A stretch of DNA of 64,000 nt from Rebecca billardiae RCC1528. Lineage: Eukaryota; Protista; Haptophyta. The stretch is taken from NCBI GenBank assembly GCA_965240325.2, contig OZ251223.1, positions 1,922,001 through 1,986,000 of the forward strand. Reading direction: 5' to 3'. The notes beneath the pieces were generated by a model. That model was not told where the DNA came from. It saw only the letters and a list, made by a program, of their open reading frames with translations, and made no database searches. Position 1 is the first letter of the stretch. Each line of letters starts with the position of its first letter. Of the stretch, positions 57,676-64,000 are shown in pieces. The translations under genes were made by a program, and so were the position numbers.

Positions 57676-57726
<51 letters not shown>

Positions 57727-57748
57727 ATATATATATATATATATGTGT
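57675..57748. repeat. (TA)n/(TATG)n microsatellite
   Basis: Direct reading. Confidence 0.95.
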
Positions 57749-58823
57749 GTGTCCTCCTGCATGAAGAGCGATGCGACGCCATTGAGTATGGACGAACATC
57801 ACCCACAGTCTGCGTGATGTGCATGCGAGGGCAGGTATTGCAGCATATATGCGAGCATGCAGCAAATGCCGATACACACCATGCCGAAATGGTGATGTAT
57901 AAATATATACTTGCGCGTGGTGGGGATTTGTCCCTGGCTGAACGGGAAGAGCGACTGAGCCGACGGTGCCAAAGCTGCGCGCAGACTGCGCCAGCGACGC
58001 AGCGTGTGGCAGCAAGGTCCCTGGCTCAGGCAAGCGCAGCACTCACAGGCCTGACGACAAGGTTGTCAACCACAACGGAGGCTGCAGGGGCGGATGGCGG
58101 GTTTCGCAACGAGCACAAGCAAAGAACGCAGAGGAGATGGCGGGACCTCGGGCTTTGCAGATGCGCAGGCCGAAGCAGGGGCTGCCGAGAGGCGAGAGAT
58201 GAGCAGCTCGGCCCGAAAGGTCGTGTAACCGATGATCGAGCGAGCTCTGCTAGGTGGGCTGCTTGATATGAACTTTGGTAAGTTGCCACGCCGACTTAAG
58301 ATGACCTTGTATATGATCTCGAGCGCCGGATAGTGGAGAGGAGCGGGTACTTACAGAGGAGCCAGTGTGGTTGGCCGATATGAAAGGACCAGCGCCCGCC
58401 ATGATGATGATAAAGGATAGCTCCGTGGCCGATGAGCTCCGGAAATCGACTGCAACTACCTGCAGGACCTAGAAGACGATGGCGGCCCTTGTCCACCAGC
58501 TGCGCGTTGCCTTTCCAGCCTCCCGACACACTCGGTTATAACTCCGTTATAACGCCACGTGTCCTCCTGCATGAAGAGCGACGCGACGCCATTGAGTATG
58601 GACGAACATCACCCACAGTCTGCGTGATGTGCATGCGAGGGCAGGTATTGCAGCATATATGCGAGCATGCAGCAAATGCCGATACACACCATGCCGAAAT
58701 GGTGATGTATAAATATATACTTGCGCGTGGTGGGGATTTGTCCCTGGCTGAACGGGAAGAGCGACTGAGCCGACGGTGCCAAAGCTGCGCGCAGACTGCG
58801 CCAGCGTGTGGCAGCAAGGTCCC
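57749..58823. repeat. Pair of ~265-bp direct repeats (57749-58021, 58559-58823) around a ~540-bp spacer
   Basis: Near-identical copies differing by one substitution and an 8-nt duplication. Confidence 0.93.
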
Positions 58824-59032: not shown

Positions 59033-59278
59033 CCTACAAAGGTCTGGCCCGCAAGGGCTGTGCCTACAAAGGCTGTGCCTACAAAGGTCACTGGTGTGCC
59101 TACAAAGGTCACGGATGTGCCTACAAAGGCTGTGCCTACAAAGGTCACTGGTGTGCCTACAAAGGTCACTGGTGTGGCCTACAAAGGTCACGGGTGTGCC
59201 TACAAAGGCTGTGCCTACAAAGGTCACTGGTATGCCTGCAAAGGCTGTGCCCACAAAGGCTGGTGGCCTACAAAGGCT
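59033..59278. repeat. Minisatellite of 15- and 21-bp units built on GCCTACAAAGG
   Basis: About 13 cores; units GTGCCTACAAAGGCT and GTGCCTACAAAGGTCACTGGT. Confidence 0.95.
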
Positions 59279-59492
59279 TGGCCGAAGCGTAGAGACGATG
59301 TTGCTGCAACTTGAGCGAGAGATGTGCGCCGCGTCGCCAGAGCGCGCCTCCCAGCGGAGCCGGCAACGCGTGCGCCGGTGCGAGGGCCGGATCCGGCTGC
59401 GAGCGCGACTGCAGCGCGAGCGCGACGGGCGGCGGCCGCCGCCAAACTGCGCCGCGCGACTGGCGAGCAGTCGATGCAGCGGCGTCCGTGTC

Positions 59493-62400
59493 TCAGCGAC
59501 AAGCGCCCACCGCGGGCGGCGCGCCACGGACTCGCGAGCGCCGCCACACCGGCCCAGGGTTGCTGGCCTCGCCCACGCGCTCACCGCGCAGCGGCATGGG
59601 CGGATCGGCAGCGAGGACGAGCGGACGCGAGAGCAGCGCGACGAGCTCGTCAAGCAGCGCCTGCACGCGCACGACGGGCACTGCGAGCCACGTCGGGCGT
59701 AGGCCGAGCTGGGCGCACAGGCGCTCGAGGACGCCAAACTCGCCGCGGCTAGCTGCGTCCGCCAACGGGTTCATCTCGGAGAGGAGGAACTCCGAGTCGG
59801 CCAGCTCTGCGATCGTTCGCCATTCAGGGGCGTCGAGCAGCGCGAGGTGCGCGTGCTGCAGCAGCGGGGAGTGCGCGGACAGGTTGTGGAGGATGTGGTC
59901 GGTGACAGAGCTGTCGGTGCGGAGCCGGATGACGGCGCCTGCAATGCGCGGCGCGAAGATCAGCACGTTGGCGAACAGCGCGACGAACTCGAGCGCGACC
60001 ACCGGCAGAGCGAGGTCCGACGCGCGCAAGGGCAGGCTCCAGCAGAGCCCGTGGGCGTAGCCCCCCAGCGACGGCACGCGCGCGCCATCCTTGGCGGCGT
60101 CCGAGAAGAGCACGAACGCAGGCGGCGCCGCGGCCGGCAGGTGCCGGCGGGTCGAGGGGCCCGGCAGCGCGTTGGAGAAGAGCACGCCCGCGGTGGAGCG
60201 CAGGAGCTTGGCCCAGCGCGCGCACGCGGCGCGGAGCGTGGCGGTGATGGGCACCGGCCGCGCTGGGTGGCGTCCGAGCTCGCCGAAGTGCGTGTACAGG
60301 CCGTAGAAGAACGTGCGGTTCGCCGGCGTGAGCGGGCGGAAGTGCTCGAGCAGACCGACGAGCGCGCGAAAGGTAGAGAAGGGTACCGGCCTGCTCGCCA
60401 GCAAGTCGTCCAGGATGACGAGAGCGCGCAGGATCTTGGCCGGCGGCACCGCGAGGACGCCAGCGCAGACGACAAAGTCGCAGCCGAGCCAGAGCGCTGA
60501 CTGGCCGATTTGGCGCTTCTCGGGGATGGCCATGAGCAGGCCGAGGCTGGTGGTGACGCGGTGCCAGACGGAGAGAAAGCGCACCGTTCTGTCCACGCCG
60601 ACGATGGAGAAGTTGGTGTCGTCCGTGAAGCAGTCGCCGCTGAAGAGGCGCAGCTGGGGGCGCCGCGTGGTCACCGCGAGCGCACGGCGCTGCTCGATCC
60701 AGCTGCGCACAGCAGGGGGCGTCAGCGGGTCAGCGAGCATCGCCTCGAAGCGCGGCAGCTCCTCGTCGTCGAAGCACCGCGAGGCGATCTGCACGACGGT
60801 CGTGCTTAGGCGCTGCGCGATGTTACTGCTGGGCGAGAGCCCAAAGCCGAGGCGCGACTCAGAGACGACGACGTGGCCGCCGGCGGCAACGCCCTCGCCG
60901 TCCGGCCGCAGCCAGAGGAGGCAGACGTTTGGCAGCTCGGCCGTTGCGACGCCGAGGTGGTTGAAGAAGTCGGCCACGTCGTCTGTGAGCGTGAGTATTG
61001 GCTCGCCAAACACGGCGGCGGCGTCGAGCAGGATCGCGTTGTCGTGCATCTTGCCGCCGACCGTGGGCTTGGCTTCGCGCGGCCACTTGCGCGGCGGCGC
61101 GCGCGGCAGGGTGGGCGTAAGACCCGCTGCGATCATCCGCTCGGCCGCGGCGGACGGGGCAGCCGCTGCTGGGCGGGGCACGTCGTGCCAGCCCGCGGCC
61201 GCGTCAGCGACCTCGTCGTGGAGACCGACAGCGACGTTGAGCGGGATGACAGGCACGCCAGCTGTGTCGACGAGCGCGCGGCGGGGCGCGCCGCCATCGG
61301 TCGTGCGGCGGTGCCGGTCCGGCTCGAGCTTGCGCGGCGTGGACCCCTGCGGGCTGAGCCGGCACGGGAGGAACGGGAAGTCGTCCCAGAAGCTGTACCA
61401 GCCGCGCGCCGCGAGGCGGAGGAGCTCCTTGTGCACGGAGGAGGCGGCCGCGCCGAGGGTGGTGAGGTGCGGCAGCAGCACGAGCTGGAGAGCCACATCG
61501 GCCTTGAACCGCACACCGTGGCGCACAAAGGAGAGCAGCTCGCGGTCGGGGAAGTCGGGACCGACGGCAGCTTCGAGGGCGTCCGGCATGAGCGTGCGCG
61601 ACTCGAGCGGCGCCGAGAAGTCGAGCGGCAAGTACACGCCGTCCACCTTGCTCCGAAGGTCCCAGACGATGCCGCGGGCCTCCGGGTGGAAGAGGTCCTG
61701 GCCGATGGCGAGCGGCGCGTTGGTGCGCCGGGCGGCTGAGCCGAGCGAGAGGTACGCGCGCAGGTCGGCCTCCTCGCGGCGGCGCCAGCCCGCGACGAGC
61801 TCGAGCGCCGCGGGTAAGAGGATGTCAGCAACCGACCGCGGGCGGTACGAAGTCGCACGCTGCCGCCGCGGCGTCGGCACGTTGGTGTGAGGAGGGTCAA
61901 AGCGCGCCGACGTGGAGTCAAAGGGGAGCGCGGCGAGCGACCCGAGCGGCACGCGCATCGAGTGACCCTGCAGGGCGACAGGGATGCTGGAGCGGTCGGT
62001 GCGCACGCGATCGCCCCAGCCGGTGAGCGACTGGCCTTCCGTGGCCGGCAAGGAGGCGGCGCGTACAGCGATCATCGCCCGCAGAGCGGCGTCGGTCGCC
62101 TCGGCCGCGCGCGCCCCTTGCGCCCACGAGCGCTGCCTGGCGGCCGCCAGCGCCAGATCGCGCGCGGCCGAGGAACCGGCCGGACCCGTCGCGGCGAGAG
62201 GAGGCATGCGACGAGGGAGGACGTCCACGAGCGCTGCACACGCAGCGGCGGCCGGCTCGTACAAGTCGGAGCCGGCGAACGCGCCCAAAGGGAACCACTC
62301 GCAGCCAGCAGCGAGCATCGGCGAGCGCGGCGGGCGCGTTCGGCTGGGAAGGGCCACGACGTGCGCCTCGCCGCCAAAGCGGCACTCGGCGCCGCGCAGG

Positions 62401-63269
62401 CGTGTGGCGTAGATGCCCGTCAGCGGCGGGCCACCCGTGAGCGCGCGTGCGACGAGAGACTCGGCCCGTGGGCACGCCTCTGAGCGGGGGCACGACGACG
62501 TGGATGAGCCCAGAAAGGAAGTCGGCGCGCCGCCGGGCGCGCGTCGACCGGCAAGGATGAGCGGCGCGTCGGGATCGTCGAGAGCGACGACGAGCGCCAG
62601 CAGCGAGGTGCTGGAGTCCGTGGATGCACTGAGCGTGCGTGTCGGCTCGACCCACGCCAGCCGCGATGGCGGCATGCCACCTCCGCTGCGCGCCGCAGGC
62701 GCGCGCAGCGGCGGCGGCGCACCGGCGCCGGCAGATGTCGCCGCCTGGCGAGCCCGCGCGTCTCCGCCGACGCGAGGCGGCGGCAGCCGCGAGCGGTCGA
62801 GCAGCGCTGAGGCAGCCACGCCCGGCGCCAGCGAAGCGAGAGGCGTGGAGCCGCCCCGCCCCGCCGGCGCGAGCGGCGGCGGCGGCGCATCGCAGCCGAC
62901 AGCCGGCGCGGTTGGGCGCGCGCGCTTGGCGCCGTCGACGCGGGGCGGCTGCAGCCGCGCGCGGGCAAGCAGCACGGCAGCACCCACGCCCGCCGTCACC
63001 GCCGCGACTGGCGAGGAGGCGGCAGATGACGAGTCGCCTGCGCGCGCAGCCTCAGCACGCAGCGACCGCGGTGAGGCAGCGGCGGCCAGCCCACCCGGCA
63101 AGGGAGCAGCAGGTGGTACCGCCGGCAGGGGCACCTCGGCGCTCATCGCCGCGCGCGCGGCAGCGCCCGCGGGCCCGGCGGCGACCGCCGCCGCGGACGC
63201 CGGCGAGAGAAGCGGGCAGCAATCCGCCGGCGGGCGCCCACTTAGTGGCCCGTCGGCAAGCCAAAACCC
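59493..63269 (-). CDS. DIRS/Ngaro-type pol ORF (reverse transcriptase + RNase H), probably reached by -1 frameshift
   Basis: RT motifs TDDVADFFNHL, RLGFGLSPSSNIAQR, FTDD, PEK, WLG. DIRS-type RNase H motifs LFSDAAK..LGG, LEFVAL, RTDSSV, NPLADAASRG. Confidence 0.88.
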   Translation of the reverse strand, partial: GFWLADGPLSGRPPADCCPLLSPASAAAVAAGPAGAAARAAMSAEVPLPAVPPAAPLPGGLAAAASPRSLRAEAARAGDSSSAASSPVAAVTAGVGAAVLLARARLQPPRVDGAKRARPTAPAVGCDAPPPPLAPAGRGGSTPLASLAPGVAASALLDRSRLPPPRVGGDARARQAATSAGAGAPPPLRAPAARSGGGMPPSRLAWVEPTRTLSASTDSSTSLLALVVALDDPDAPLILAGRRAPGGAPTSFLGSSTSSCPRSEACPRAESLVARALTGGPPLTGIYATRLRGAECRFGGEAHVVALPSRTRPPRSPMLAAGCEWFPLGAFAGSDLYEPAAAACAALVDVLPRRMPPLAATGPAGSSAARDLALAAARQRSWAQGARAAEATDAALRAMIAVRAASLPATEGQSLTGWGDRVRTDRSSIPVALQGHSMRVPLGSLAALPFDSTSARFDPPHTNVPTPRRQRATSYRPRSVADILLPAALELVAGWRRREEADLRAYLSLGSAARRTNAPLAIGQDLFHPEARGIVWDLRSKVDGVYLPLDFSAPLESRTLMPDALEAAVGPDFPDRELLSFVRHGVRFKADVALQLVLLPHLTTLGAAASSVHKELLRLAARGWYSFWDDFPFLPCRLSPQGSTPRKLEPDRHRRTTDGGAPRRALVDTAGVPVIPLNVAVGLHDEVADAAAGWHDVPRPAAAAPSAAAERMIAAGLTPTLPRAPPRKWPREAKPTVGGKMHDNAILLDAAAVFGEPILTLTDDVADFFNHLGVATAELPNVCLLWLRPDGEGVAAGGHVVVSESRLGFGLSPSSNIAQRLSTTVVQIASRCFDDEELPRFEAMLADPLTPPAVRSWIEQRRALAVTTRRPQLRLFSGDCFTDDTNFSIVGVDRTVRFLSVWHRVTTSLGLLMAIPEKRQIGQSALWLGCDFVVCAGVLAVPPAKILRALVILDDLLASRPVPFSTFRALVGLLEHFRPLTPANRTFFYGLYTHFGELGRHPARPVPITATLRAACARWAKLLRSTAGVLFSNALPGPSTRRHLPAAAPPAFVLFSDAAKDGARVPSLGGYAHGLCWSLPLRASDLALPVVALEFVALFANVLIFAPRIAGAVIRLRTDSSVTDHILHNLSAHSPLLQHAHLALLDAPEWRTIAELADSEFLLSEMNPLADAASRGEFGVLERLCAQLGLRPTWLAVPVVRVQALLDELVALLSRPLVLAADPPMPLRGERVGEASNPGPVWRRSRVRGAPPAVGACR
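63226..63269 (-). promoter_or_regulatory. -1 programmed ribosomal frameshift signal
   Basis: G GGU UUU in the ORF1 frame, 5-nt spacer, then stem-loop GCCGACGGGC-CACUAAGUG-GGC-GCCCGCCGGC. Confidence 0.75.
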
Positions 63270-64000
63270 GAGGGCCAAGCGTCGAGAGCATGCTGGGCGA
63301 GGTCGACGGCATCGAGCGAGTGCGCGCCGGCGCCGATCGCGCCGTGGCCGGGTTGGCCCGAACACGGGCAGCGCCGGATGGCCACGTCCGCGAGTGAGGG
63401 CTTGGCCCTGCCGTCGGCGCGCAGCTTCGGGAACCGCGTGGCCACGACCGGCAGGCACGGGTCGACGTGCATCACACTCACGTACGCCGCCGAGAAGGAG
63501 CTCAGGCGGAAGAGGCCCAAGTTGTCCGAGAGCAGCCCGATGCCGAAGCAGTCGTGCGTCTCGGAGACGACATAGCCGACGGGGGGGCCGAAAGGCTTGG
63601 TGTTGAGGATGGTCACCTGCACGTCCGAGCCGTAGCTCGGCGCAGCGGCCGCAGGCCCGCGCGCCAACTGGCGCTGCTTCTTGCTCGGCGGGGGTTGCAG
63701 CTGCGCGCGAGCACGCCCTGGAGCGGTGGGCGACGGCTGCGGTTGCCCGCGCAAGGGGTTGGCCGGGGTGCTCGGGCCGGGGCCTGCCGACTGGCCGGCG
63801 CCCTGGCTGGCGCGGAGAGCGAGCATCCGGTCGACAAACGCCGCGCTCTGGTTCCAGGTGATCATGGTCGCCTGCGTGGAGCGACAGGCCTCGCGGATGG
63901 TGGCCAGCACGACCGACGACGGGTCGAGGAACGGCAGCTCAGGAATGCGCGCGAGCGGGTTGGGGTCGGCGAGGGCGACGCCAAAGCGCGTCTCGAGGTC
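63242..64000 (-). CDS. ORF1 (gag-like) of the retroelement, 5' part outside the window
   Basis: Open frame continuing to the window edge, overlapping pol in a different frame; C-terminal Cys/His cluster (DPC..RRCPCSGQPGH). Confidence 0.6.
   Translation of the reverse strand, partial: DLETRFGVALADPNPLARIPELPFLDPSSVVLATIREACRSTQATMITWNQSAAFVDRMLALRASQGAGQSAGPGPSTPANPLRGQPQPSPTAPGRARAQLQPPPSKKQRQLARGPAAAAPSYGSDVQVTILNTKPFGPPVGYVVSETHDCFGIGLLSDNLGLFRLSSFSAAYVSVMHVDPCLPVVATRFPKLRADGRAKPSLADVAIRRCPCSGQPGHGAIGAGAHSLDAVDLAQHALDAWPSGFGLPTGH

Follow-up and report, generated by a model that had tools for sequence, protein, structure and literature searches.

A candidate StopGo/2A-like motif of a distinct class at the end of the pol frame of a DIRS-order retroelement in the haptophyte Rebecca billardiae

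Introduction

Does a short peptide motif close to the end of a retroelement pol open reading frame (ORF) belong to the ribosome-skipping signals known as StopGo or 2A peptides, and if so, to which class? The question is raised by a stretch of 64,000 nucleotides from Rebecca billardiae RCC1528 (assembly GCA_965240325.2, contig OZ251223.1, positions 1,922,001 to 1,986,000; this whole stretch is called the window, and feature positions refer to it). The window contains a tyrosine-recombinase retroelement of the Ngaro/PAT type whose pol ORF encodes, near its C terminus, the 2A-like motif LRGERVGEASNPGP (minus strand, 59550-59591). The C terminus reads PMPLRGERVGEASNPGP and is followed by an 18-amino acid tail and a TGA stop. 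From comparison of sequences, we put the probability that the motif is a StopGo/2A-like signal of a distinct class, vestigial in the window copy, at roughly 60%.

Class A 2A peptides are defined by the core (D/G/C/N)(V/I)ExNPGP, positions p12 to p19, with rare active variants that include H at p16, and G at p13 if p12 is also G; N16, E14, and D12 contact the 28S rRNA (Li et al., PMC12846837). When P2A and F2A were scanned by mutation, I was the only substitute accepted at V13 and H the only one at E14, and the same study found 39-74% activity in natural 2A-like peptides that have A at the position of the core E (p14) (Baral et al., bioRxiv 10.64898/2026.09.24.754024). Class B, in its published description, has the form W...EEGIEP(N/H)PGP with N and H equally frequent and comes from double-stranded RNA viruses, ticks, and dinoflagellates; the same source reports 2A peptides in Haptista (Rao et al., PMC12338488). 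Variants with H at p16 are described as active (PMC12338488, PMC12846837). In APE-type non-long terminal repeat (non-LTR) retrotransposons (L1Tc, Ingi, and the CR1/Rex1/L2 clades), proven 2A sequences sit on the N-terminal side of the APE domain (PMC3708506).

Results

The motif lies at the junction of RT-RNase H and a probable tyrosine recombinase in sister copies

A first-pass annotation, made from the letters alone, had reported an NPGP motif near the end of pol, and both its coordinates and its reading agree with the sequence and the translation (Table 1). The RNase H domain ends approximately 45-60 residues ahead of the motif, so the accompanying description, right after RNase H, is correct. 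The motif had also been called a GEAS variant with a non-canonical core, which is accurate: E and A stand where tested 2A peptides need V/I and E, respectively.

The genome (72 Mb in 41 contigs, approximately 68% G+C) was searched for further copies, and the pol region was found ten times at 94-100% identity, once at 59% identity (contig C5), and once as a partial copy. In the copies on contigs C33, C18, and C23, in which pol is 94-96% identical to that of the window, no stop follows GEARNPGP, and the frame remains open for 566 more amino acids. The C-terminal part of this extension matched PF00589 with an E-value of 7e-6 and 26.3 bits, just below the cut-off of 27.1. It carries an HSFR...RWRS...Y box, and the R...HxxR...Y pattern aligns with the recombinase ends of database relatives; on these sequence features, the downstream enzyme in the three copies is probably a tyrosine recombinase. 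Contig C12 has the recombinase region too, with one stop, and C38 has part of it. In C33, C18, and C23 the motif therefore stands within one ORF between the reverse transcriptase (RT)-RNase H part and the recombinase. It had been proposed that the motif separates RT-RNase H from a lost recombinase or methyltransferase; the anatomy of that proposal was right, as the 566-amino acid recombinase region of the sisters indicates, but in this family the motif is not followed by a methyltransferase.

The window copy belongs to a subfamily of seven copies, 99-100% identical to each other, in which an in-frame TGA stands in place of the other subfamily's sense codon. The first 85 amino acids past its motif align with the recombinase-bearing sisters at 69% identity, interrupted by the one TGA, and homology stops approximately 180 nt beyond the TGA, at about 59314. 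The motif is thus not at a junction here. The downstream enzyme has thus been lost from this copy, as had been supposed, with a TGA 18 codons past the motif and an end of homology beyond it. With the recombinase deleted, the motif would be a vestige at the pol C terminus and, since nothing useful follows it, could at most signal release where pol ends.

The motif is retained in a diverged sister element

The pol of the C5 copy is 54% identical to that of the window copy over 995 amino acids (tblastn) and 59% identical over the last 307. Its ORF ends with DGVRFGEATHPGP plus 13 residues and keeps G-V-R-F-GEA-T-HPGP. From the last RNase H helix to the motif, the C5 and window families have linkers of different sequence and length, with an indel, and G-x-R-x-G-E-A-x-[NH]-P-G-P is retained. 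In this copy, pol homology ends at HPGP, and no recombinase was found within 10 kb past the motif. Exactly at its pol stop, 13 codons past HPGP, there is an 86-nt near-perfect palindrome (L018 and L026, G000:C5, about 3000659-3000743), which forms the end of the family homology and may be an insertion or a breakpoint.

By these alignments, the motif is conserved among the sister elements of this genome and is not general to the element type. The check for conservation in sister elements, suggested by the first-pass annotation, had a divided outcome: the motif is kept in the C5 copy but absent from relatives at 36-42% identity.

Conservation bears on one alternative to a StopGo signal, namely that the motif is a relic, decayed or inactive, of an ancestral 2A-like sequence, which does not skip any longer, or merely lowers downstream translation, and is kept by inertia in young copies. 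The window subfamily retains the motif with nothing useful after it, and its copies are so alike that there has been little time for selection to act. Many eukaryotic 2A-like peptides, moreover, lower protein abundance instead of skipping cleanly (PMC13405545). We regard the relic as distinctly unlikely because the motif persists at 54-59% identity while the surrounding linker changes, and because inertia does not explain why over 100 independent carriers share it in varied codons (see below).

The motif recurs in two retroelement families of the genome

A back-translated search with GEAx[NH]PGP gave 21 sites in the 72-Mb genome and none for a reversed control. Eleven sites are in recombinase elements, eight in a long interspersed nuclear element (LINE) family, and two are orphans; with 19/21 sites in two retroelement families and no control hits, the motif is more than chance. 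The search for the motif and its domain context, another of the suggested checks, thus placed it at the pol-recombinase junction and at a pre-APE site in the LINE. The genome nowhere encodes canonical cores of the form [DEG][IVM]Ex[NH]PGP.

The eight LINE copies (G000: L035 on C5, L042 on C12, L033 on C1, L038 on C10, L041 on C11, L045 on C17, L049 on C26, and L043 on C15) carry GQRQGEAKNPGP 11 amino acids upstream of an Exo_endo_phos (APE) domain, with at least 500 amino acids in frame upstream, so the motif lies in one ORF between an ORF1-like part and APE. No Pfam family matched the upstream residues, and a word-index protein search with the LINE ORF returned no database relatives. The recombinase and LINE families share GEAxNPGP together with G at -11, R at -9, and P at -14.

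The same counts speak to the alternative that NPGP arose by chance, in a protein rich in Pro, Gly, and Ala and encoded by a G+C-rich genome. Composition does make PGP-like strings common, and the two orphan sites (L032 and L039) are in short frames without homology to either element family; they were set aside and taken as chance matches or relics. However, coincidence is contradicted by the contrast with the reversed controls, here and in the viral contigs described below, by the occurrence of the motif at the same junction in diverged sister elements, and by biases at positions that the pattern left unspecified. We consider it extremely improbable.

Two further sites in the genome encode related strings without the preceding G: EAMHPGP at C10:977220-977239 and EAQHPGP at C13:2119471-2119490 (G000).

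The motif recurs in metagenomic retroelements and RNA viruses

The extended pattern G-x-R-x-GEA-x-[NH]-PGP was found in at least 120 metagenome contigs, a lower bound, mostly in LINE-like ORFs. There is strong bias at positions that the pattern did not constrain: among the 111 distinct peptides from the metagenome matches listed, the residue before GEA (-8) is I or V in 68%, and the prefix tends toward [GP][LY][RA]. The residue before PGP is H in 63 and N in 48. Pfam matches place the motif 13-27 amino acids upstream of an APE domain, which is followed by RT, in two ORFs (L069 and L108) and approximately 700 amino acids before RT in four LINE-like ORFs (L071, L095, L135, and L166); in L056 it precedes a DnaJ and an RNase H domain. 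Several metagenome ORFs carry two or three motifs in tandem. One further ORF (L133:205-5193:+) encodes a C5 cytosine DNA methylase at amino acids 210-393 and the motif at amino acid 728, with some 900 residues beyond it; it resembles the methylase-bearing retrotransposons known from dinoflagellates (PMC5890265).

In IMG/VR, the pattern R-[IVM]-GEA-x-[NH]-PGP matched 38 contigs (L173-L210), compared with 3 for the reversed control. The carriers include picorna-like polyproteins with an RdRP_1 domain, in which the motif lies downstream of the polymerase, and one ORF that encodes an RdRP_3 domain along with a zinc knuckle. In these environmental contigs (L175, L176, L190, L209, L191, and 33 others), the motif sometimes occurs twice in a polyprotein. 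Pfam matched nothing in the parts downstream of the motif. When the +1 position was left open, P was found there in 28/29 viral contigs; when -3 was left open, N or H was found in 28.

Synonymous codons are used freely: none is missing at any fixed position, and Arg is written with all six of its codons, which indicates that the constraint is on the peptide. BLAST searches with the pol, recombinase, and LINE proteins of the genome found no matches in any of the metagenome and viral loci, so these carriers are unrelated to the genome's elements. Recurrence in unrelated carriers is, like the anatomy and the conservation, directly observed.

The carrier is a DIRS-order element with a divergent pol and a possible frameshift site

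When 20-kb stretches of the copies were compared, split direct repeats were found in the order A1...B1-A2-B2, with 98% identity over 459 bp for the A copies and 99.6% over 248 bp for the B copies. By its sequence organization, the element is a DIRS-order (Ngaro/PAT-like) tyrosine-recombinase retroelement; the split repeats bear out the earlier assignment to the DIRS class. The terminal repeats (57700-58050 and 58450-58800) contain long TA-rich, microsatellite-like stretches, set in a genome of high G+C content. One frame of the tandem array that precedes them reads ...VGTPVTF..., and the array is much longer in the C15 and C24 copies.

The pol frame is -1 relative to ORF1. Read in the ORF1 frame, a GGGTTTT heptamer (63263-63269, minus strand) follows the X XXY YYZ pattern, and the ORF1 stop TAA (63242-63244) comes 18 nt after it; the pol frame is by then open over approximately 690 nt upstream. 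This arrangement fits the -1 frameshift proposed earlier.

Pfam gave no usable match in the pol ORF, whole or in three pieces, the RT being too divergent for RVT_1, and a PDB sequence search gave no match for pol, either as a single protein or as a six-sequence profile. A word-index protein search with the pol-recombinase ORF returned five relatives only, the sole named one being a hypothetical protein of Pavlovales sp. CCMP2436 (34% identity). The assignment of domains comes from other evidence. In an alignment of the window's ORF with the diverged copy and four database relatives, the aspartates D360 and D361 of the YxDD-type motif (FTDD here) are invariant, as are the D, D, and N columns of an RNase H-like pattern. 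The nearest protein-language-model clusters to the RT region are RVT_1/RT_RNaseH (score 0.96, 193/256 features shared). An AlphaFold2 model of the RT-RNase H stretch, built from the six-sequence alignment, is poor overall (mean predicted local distance difference test score 46) and usable for fold matches only in the RNase H part and the thumb/connection part. Within those parts, model residues 525-657 match RNase H1 (3u3g; Z 10.9, root-mean-square deviation 3.0, 120 residues aligned) and the RNase H domains of human immunodeficiency virus (HIV) and foamy-virus RTs, and for residues 418-654 the matches are retroviral RTs (HIV, MLV, and HERV-K) in their thumb, connection, and RNase H parts.

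Table 1. Positions in the window of the motif, the pol frame that carries it, and the neighboring features of the element
Feature	Position	Strand	Remarks
Motif LRGERVGEASNPGP	59550..59591	-	Extended form G-x-R-x-G-E-A-x-[NH]-P-G-P common to other families
Motif core GEASNPGP	59550-59573	-	Letters and translation
Motif codons, first to last	L 59589-59591 ... N 59559-59561, P 59556-59558, G 59553-59555, P(+1) 59550-59552	-	
Putative skipped bond	Between G (59553-59555) and P (59550-59552)	-	
18-codon tail (VWRR...GACR) and TGA	59493..59549, stop 59493-59495	-	In recombinase-bearing sisters, a sense codon stands in place of the stop and the frame continues
pol ORF	59493..63458	-	1321 amino acids from GTG; frame open for 1481 codons, upstream to about 63938, overlapping the ORF1 frame
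RNase H domain	59730..60128 (about)	-	Fold match and invariant D, D, N columns
RT region, approximate limits	60441..61202	-	FTDD (YxDD-type) motif, aspartates at 60618-60623
Non-coding linker remnant	59314..59492	-	Homologous to the start of the recombinase-leading linker in sisters; recombinase missing
Tandem repeats of about 36 bp	59052..59278	.	Flanked by pol and the 3' terminal repeats; number of units differs among copies
3' split direct repeats	57749..58806	-	B1 58559-58806, A2 58100-58558, B2 57749-57996; A1 past the window's end

Discussion

A StopGo reading of the motif

A StopGo signal is the most economical reading because a peptide motif ending in [NH]PG|P is found at polyprotein junctions, in carriers as different as RNA viruses, LINEs, and recombinase elements, and because its site in the LINE is the site of proven 2A peptides. 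On this reading, the motif forms the 3' end of a recoding module that is StopGo/2A-like and belongs to the class G-x-R-(I/V/F)-G-E-A-x-(N/H)-P-G-P. In a full element, a single ORF would run from RT-RNase H through the motif and some 230 amino acids of linker to the recombinase. The nascent peptide would halt the ribosome while Gly occupies the P site; RT-RNase H would be let go as a chain that ends in ...NPG, and translation would restart at Pro to yield the recombinase as a separate protein. Window-type copies may then rely on recombinase supplied in trans by recombinase-bearing copies. A free recombinase made from the pol ORF could explain the continued multiplication of recombinase-less copies such as that of the window, and the recent spread of such copies beside recombinase-bearing ones would fit its action in trans.

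A broader proposal, to which we give even odds, is that G-x-R-(I/V)-G-E-A-x-(N/H)-P-G-P represents a third, undescribed StopGo class with shifted I/V and E, used by protist RNA viruses, LINEs, and tyrosine-recombinase retroelements. It would then be the first 2A-type signal in the DIRS order and, with the -1 frameshift, would allow three products from one mRNA.

Several results weigh against a StopGo signal. The p13 residue is E in every member of the motif family, and p14 is A, both outside the expanded class A core; for A at p14, the active natural peptides cited above offer a precedent. A search of sequencing runs for this organism returned no RNA run. The ten residues before the core are rich in Pro, Gly, and Arg and contain neither the Leu helix of class A nor the Trp of class B. 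In 4/32 long-ORF viral contigs the -3 residue is D, K, or R, which canonical StopGo would not tolerate (R in a fifth viral match is in a 57-codon frame and is probably a chance hit). Metagenome relatives at 36-42% identity have single RT-RNase H-recombinase ORFs with long unrelated linkers and no NPGP, which means that this type of element does not need the motif. Finally, recovering further copies, as had been recommended, showed the frame past the motif entering a probable tyrosine recombinase in C33, C18, and C23 but produced no copy with all parts: gag, full pol, the motif, and the recombinase never occur together among the copies detected by search, eight of which were inspected, and the C33, C18, and C23 copies as read lack 5' parts of the element.

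Part of this would be expected if the motif were instead a conserved short linear motif with a non-recoding role, such as docking of, or processing by, a host factor or protease at domain junctions of mobile elements and viruses. Such a role would account for a core that departs from tested 2A peptides at two intolerant positions (bioRxiv 10.64898/2026.09.24.754024; PMC12846837), for the exceptions at -3, and for the extension of the motif by G(-11), R(-9), and I/V at -8 as in no described 2A class. It explains less well why the invariant part is exactly [NH]PGP, with P at +1 in nearly all open-pattern contigs, why N and H alternate as in known StopGo peptides, and why picorna-like viruses, LINEs, and recombinase retroelements share the motif at polyprotein junctions; in addition, Pfam detected no protease domain in the retroelements. 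We therefore judge a linear motif of this kind unlikely and retain the StopGo reading.

If the motif is active, the rules for 2A would widen to include stalling of the ribosome by a peptide in another register, and multi-gene expression would gain new parts, perhaps suited to algae. If the reading is true, this would also be the first recoding signal of the StopGo type in tyrosine-recombinase retroelements. Because the motif is common to RNA viruses and retroelements of similar hosts, it could help to assign hosts to orphan viral contigs.

Comparison with known systems

Like Ngaro/PAT-like elements of the order DIRS, the element has A1...B1-A2-B2 split repeats and the gene order ORF1, RT-RNase H, and, in sister copies, a probable tyrosine recombinase, and integrase and protease were likewise not detected. 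Unlike them, it has a subfamily, that of the window, without a recombinase, and an RT beyond the reach of the Pfam model. In the literature, we found no paper that places a 2A-like signal in DIRS/Ngaro elements.

Class A peptides (F2A, P2A, and T2A) share with the motif the C-terminal NPG|P (NPGP at 59550-59561 and HPGP in the C5 copy occupy p16-p19), G at p12, a variable p15, and the use of H for N; in both cases the peptide lies between two functional proteins of one ORF, and RNA viruses as well as retroelements use it. The motif differs in the residues at p13 and p14 discussed above, in its conserved G(-11) and R(-9), and in the stretch directly upstream: where class A has a Leu-rich hydrophobic helix at -10 to -14, the window's pol has DPPMPLRGER, with a Leu-rich stretch further upstream, at approximately -17 to -35.

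Compared with class B as published, the motif has similar numbers of N and H before PGP and G at -7, occurs in protist-like sequences, and is often preceded by aromatics 12-15 residues upstream in many of the metagenomic members listed. It lacks the Pro before N/H, where S, K, or A is found, and both the EG(I/V)E-P and the invariant Trp that class B has about 15 residues before the bond; its central stretch is R-V-G-E-A-S, and the window's family has no W in the 40 residues preceding the motif. This distinction is drawn from the published description of class B and not from its sequence table, so some members may overlap. Judged by sequence, the motif fits neither class A nor class B, and it departs from both in register, with I/V shifted away from the bond by two residues and E by one. 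No paper was found that prints GEA-type octamers in a literature search that covered Rao et al. apart from its supplementary tables. A GEA-type core is two changes from the survey seeds, and one change from D/G-(V/I)-E-x-NPGP was allowed, so it would have been missed by recent surveys.

The APE-side 2A peptides of non-LTR elements offer the closest parallel in position. Proven examples have DxExNPGP, and the window's carrier is a tyrosine-recombinase element and not a LINE; in the LINE of this genome and in metagenomic LINE-like ORFs, however, the motif stands 11-27 amino acids before APE, on the same side of the domain as the proven 2A peptides.

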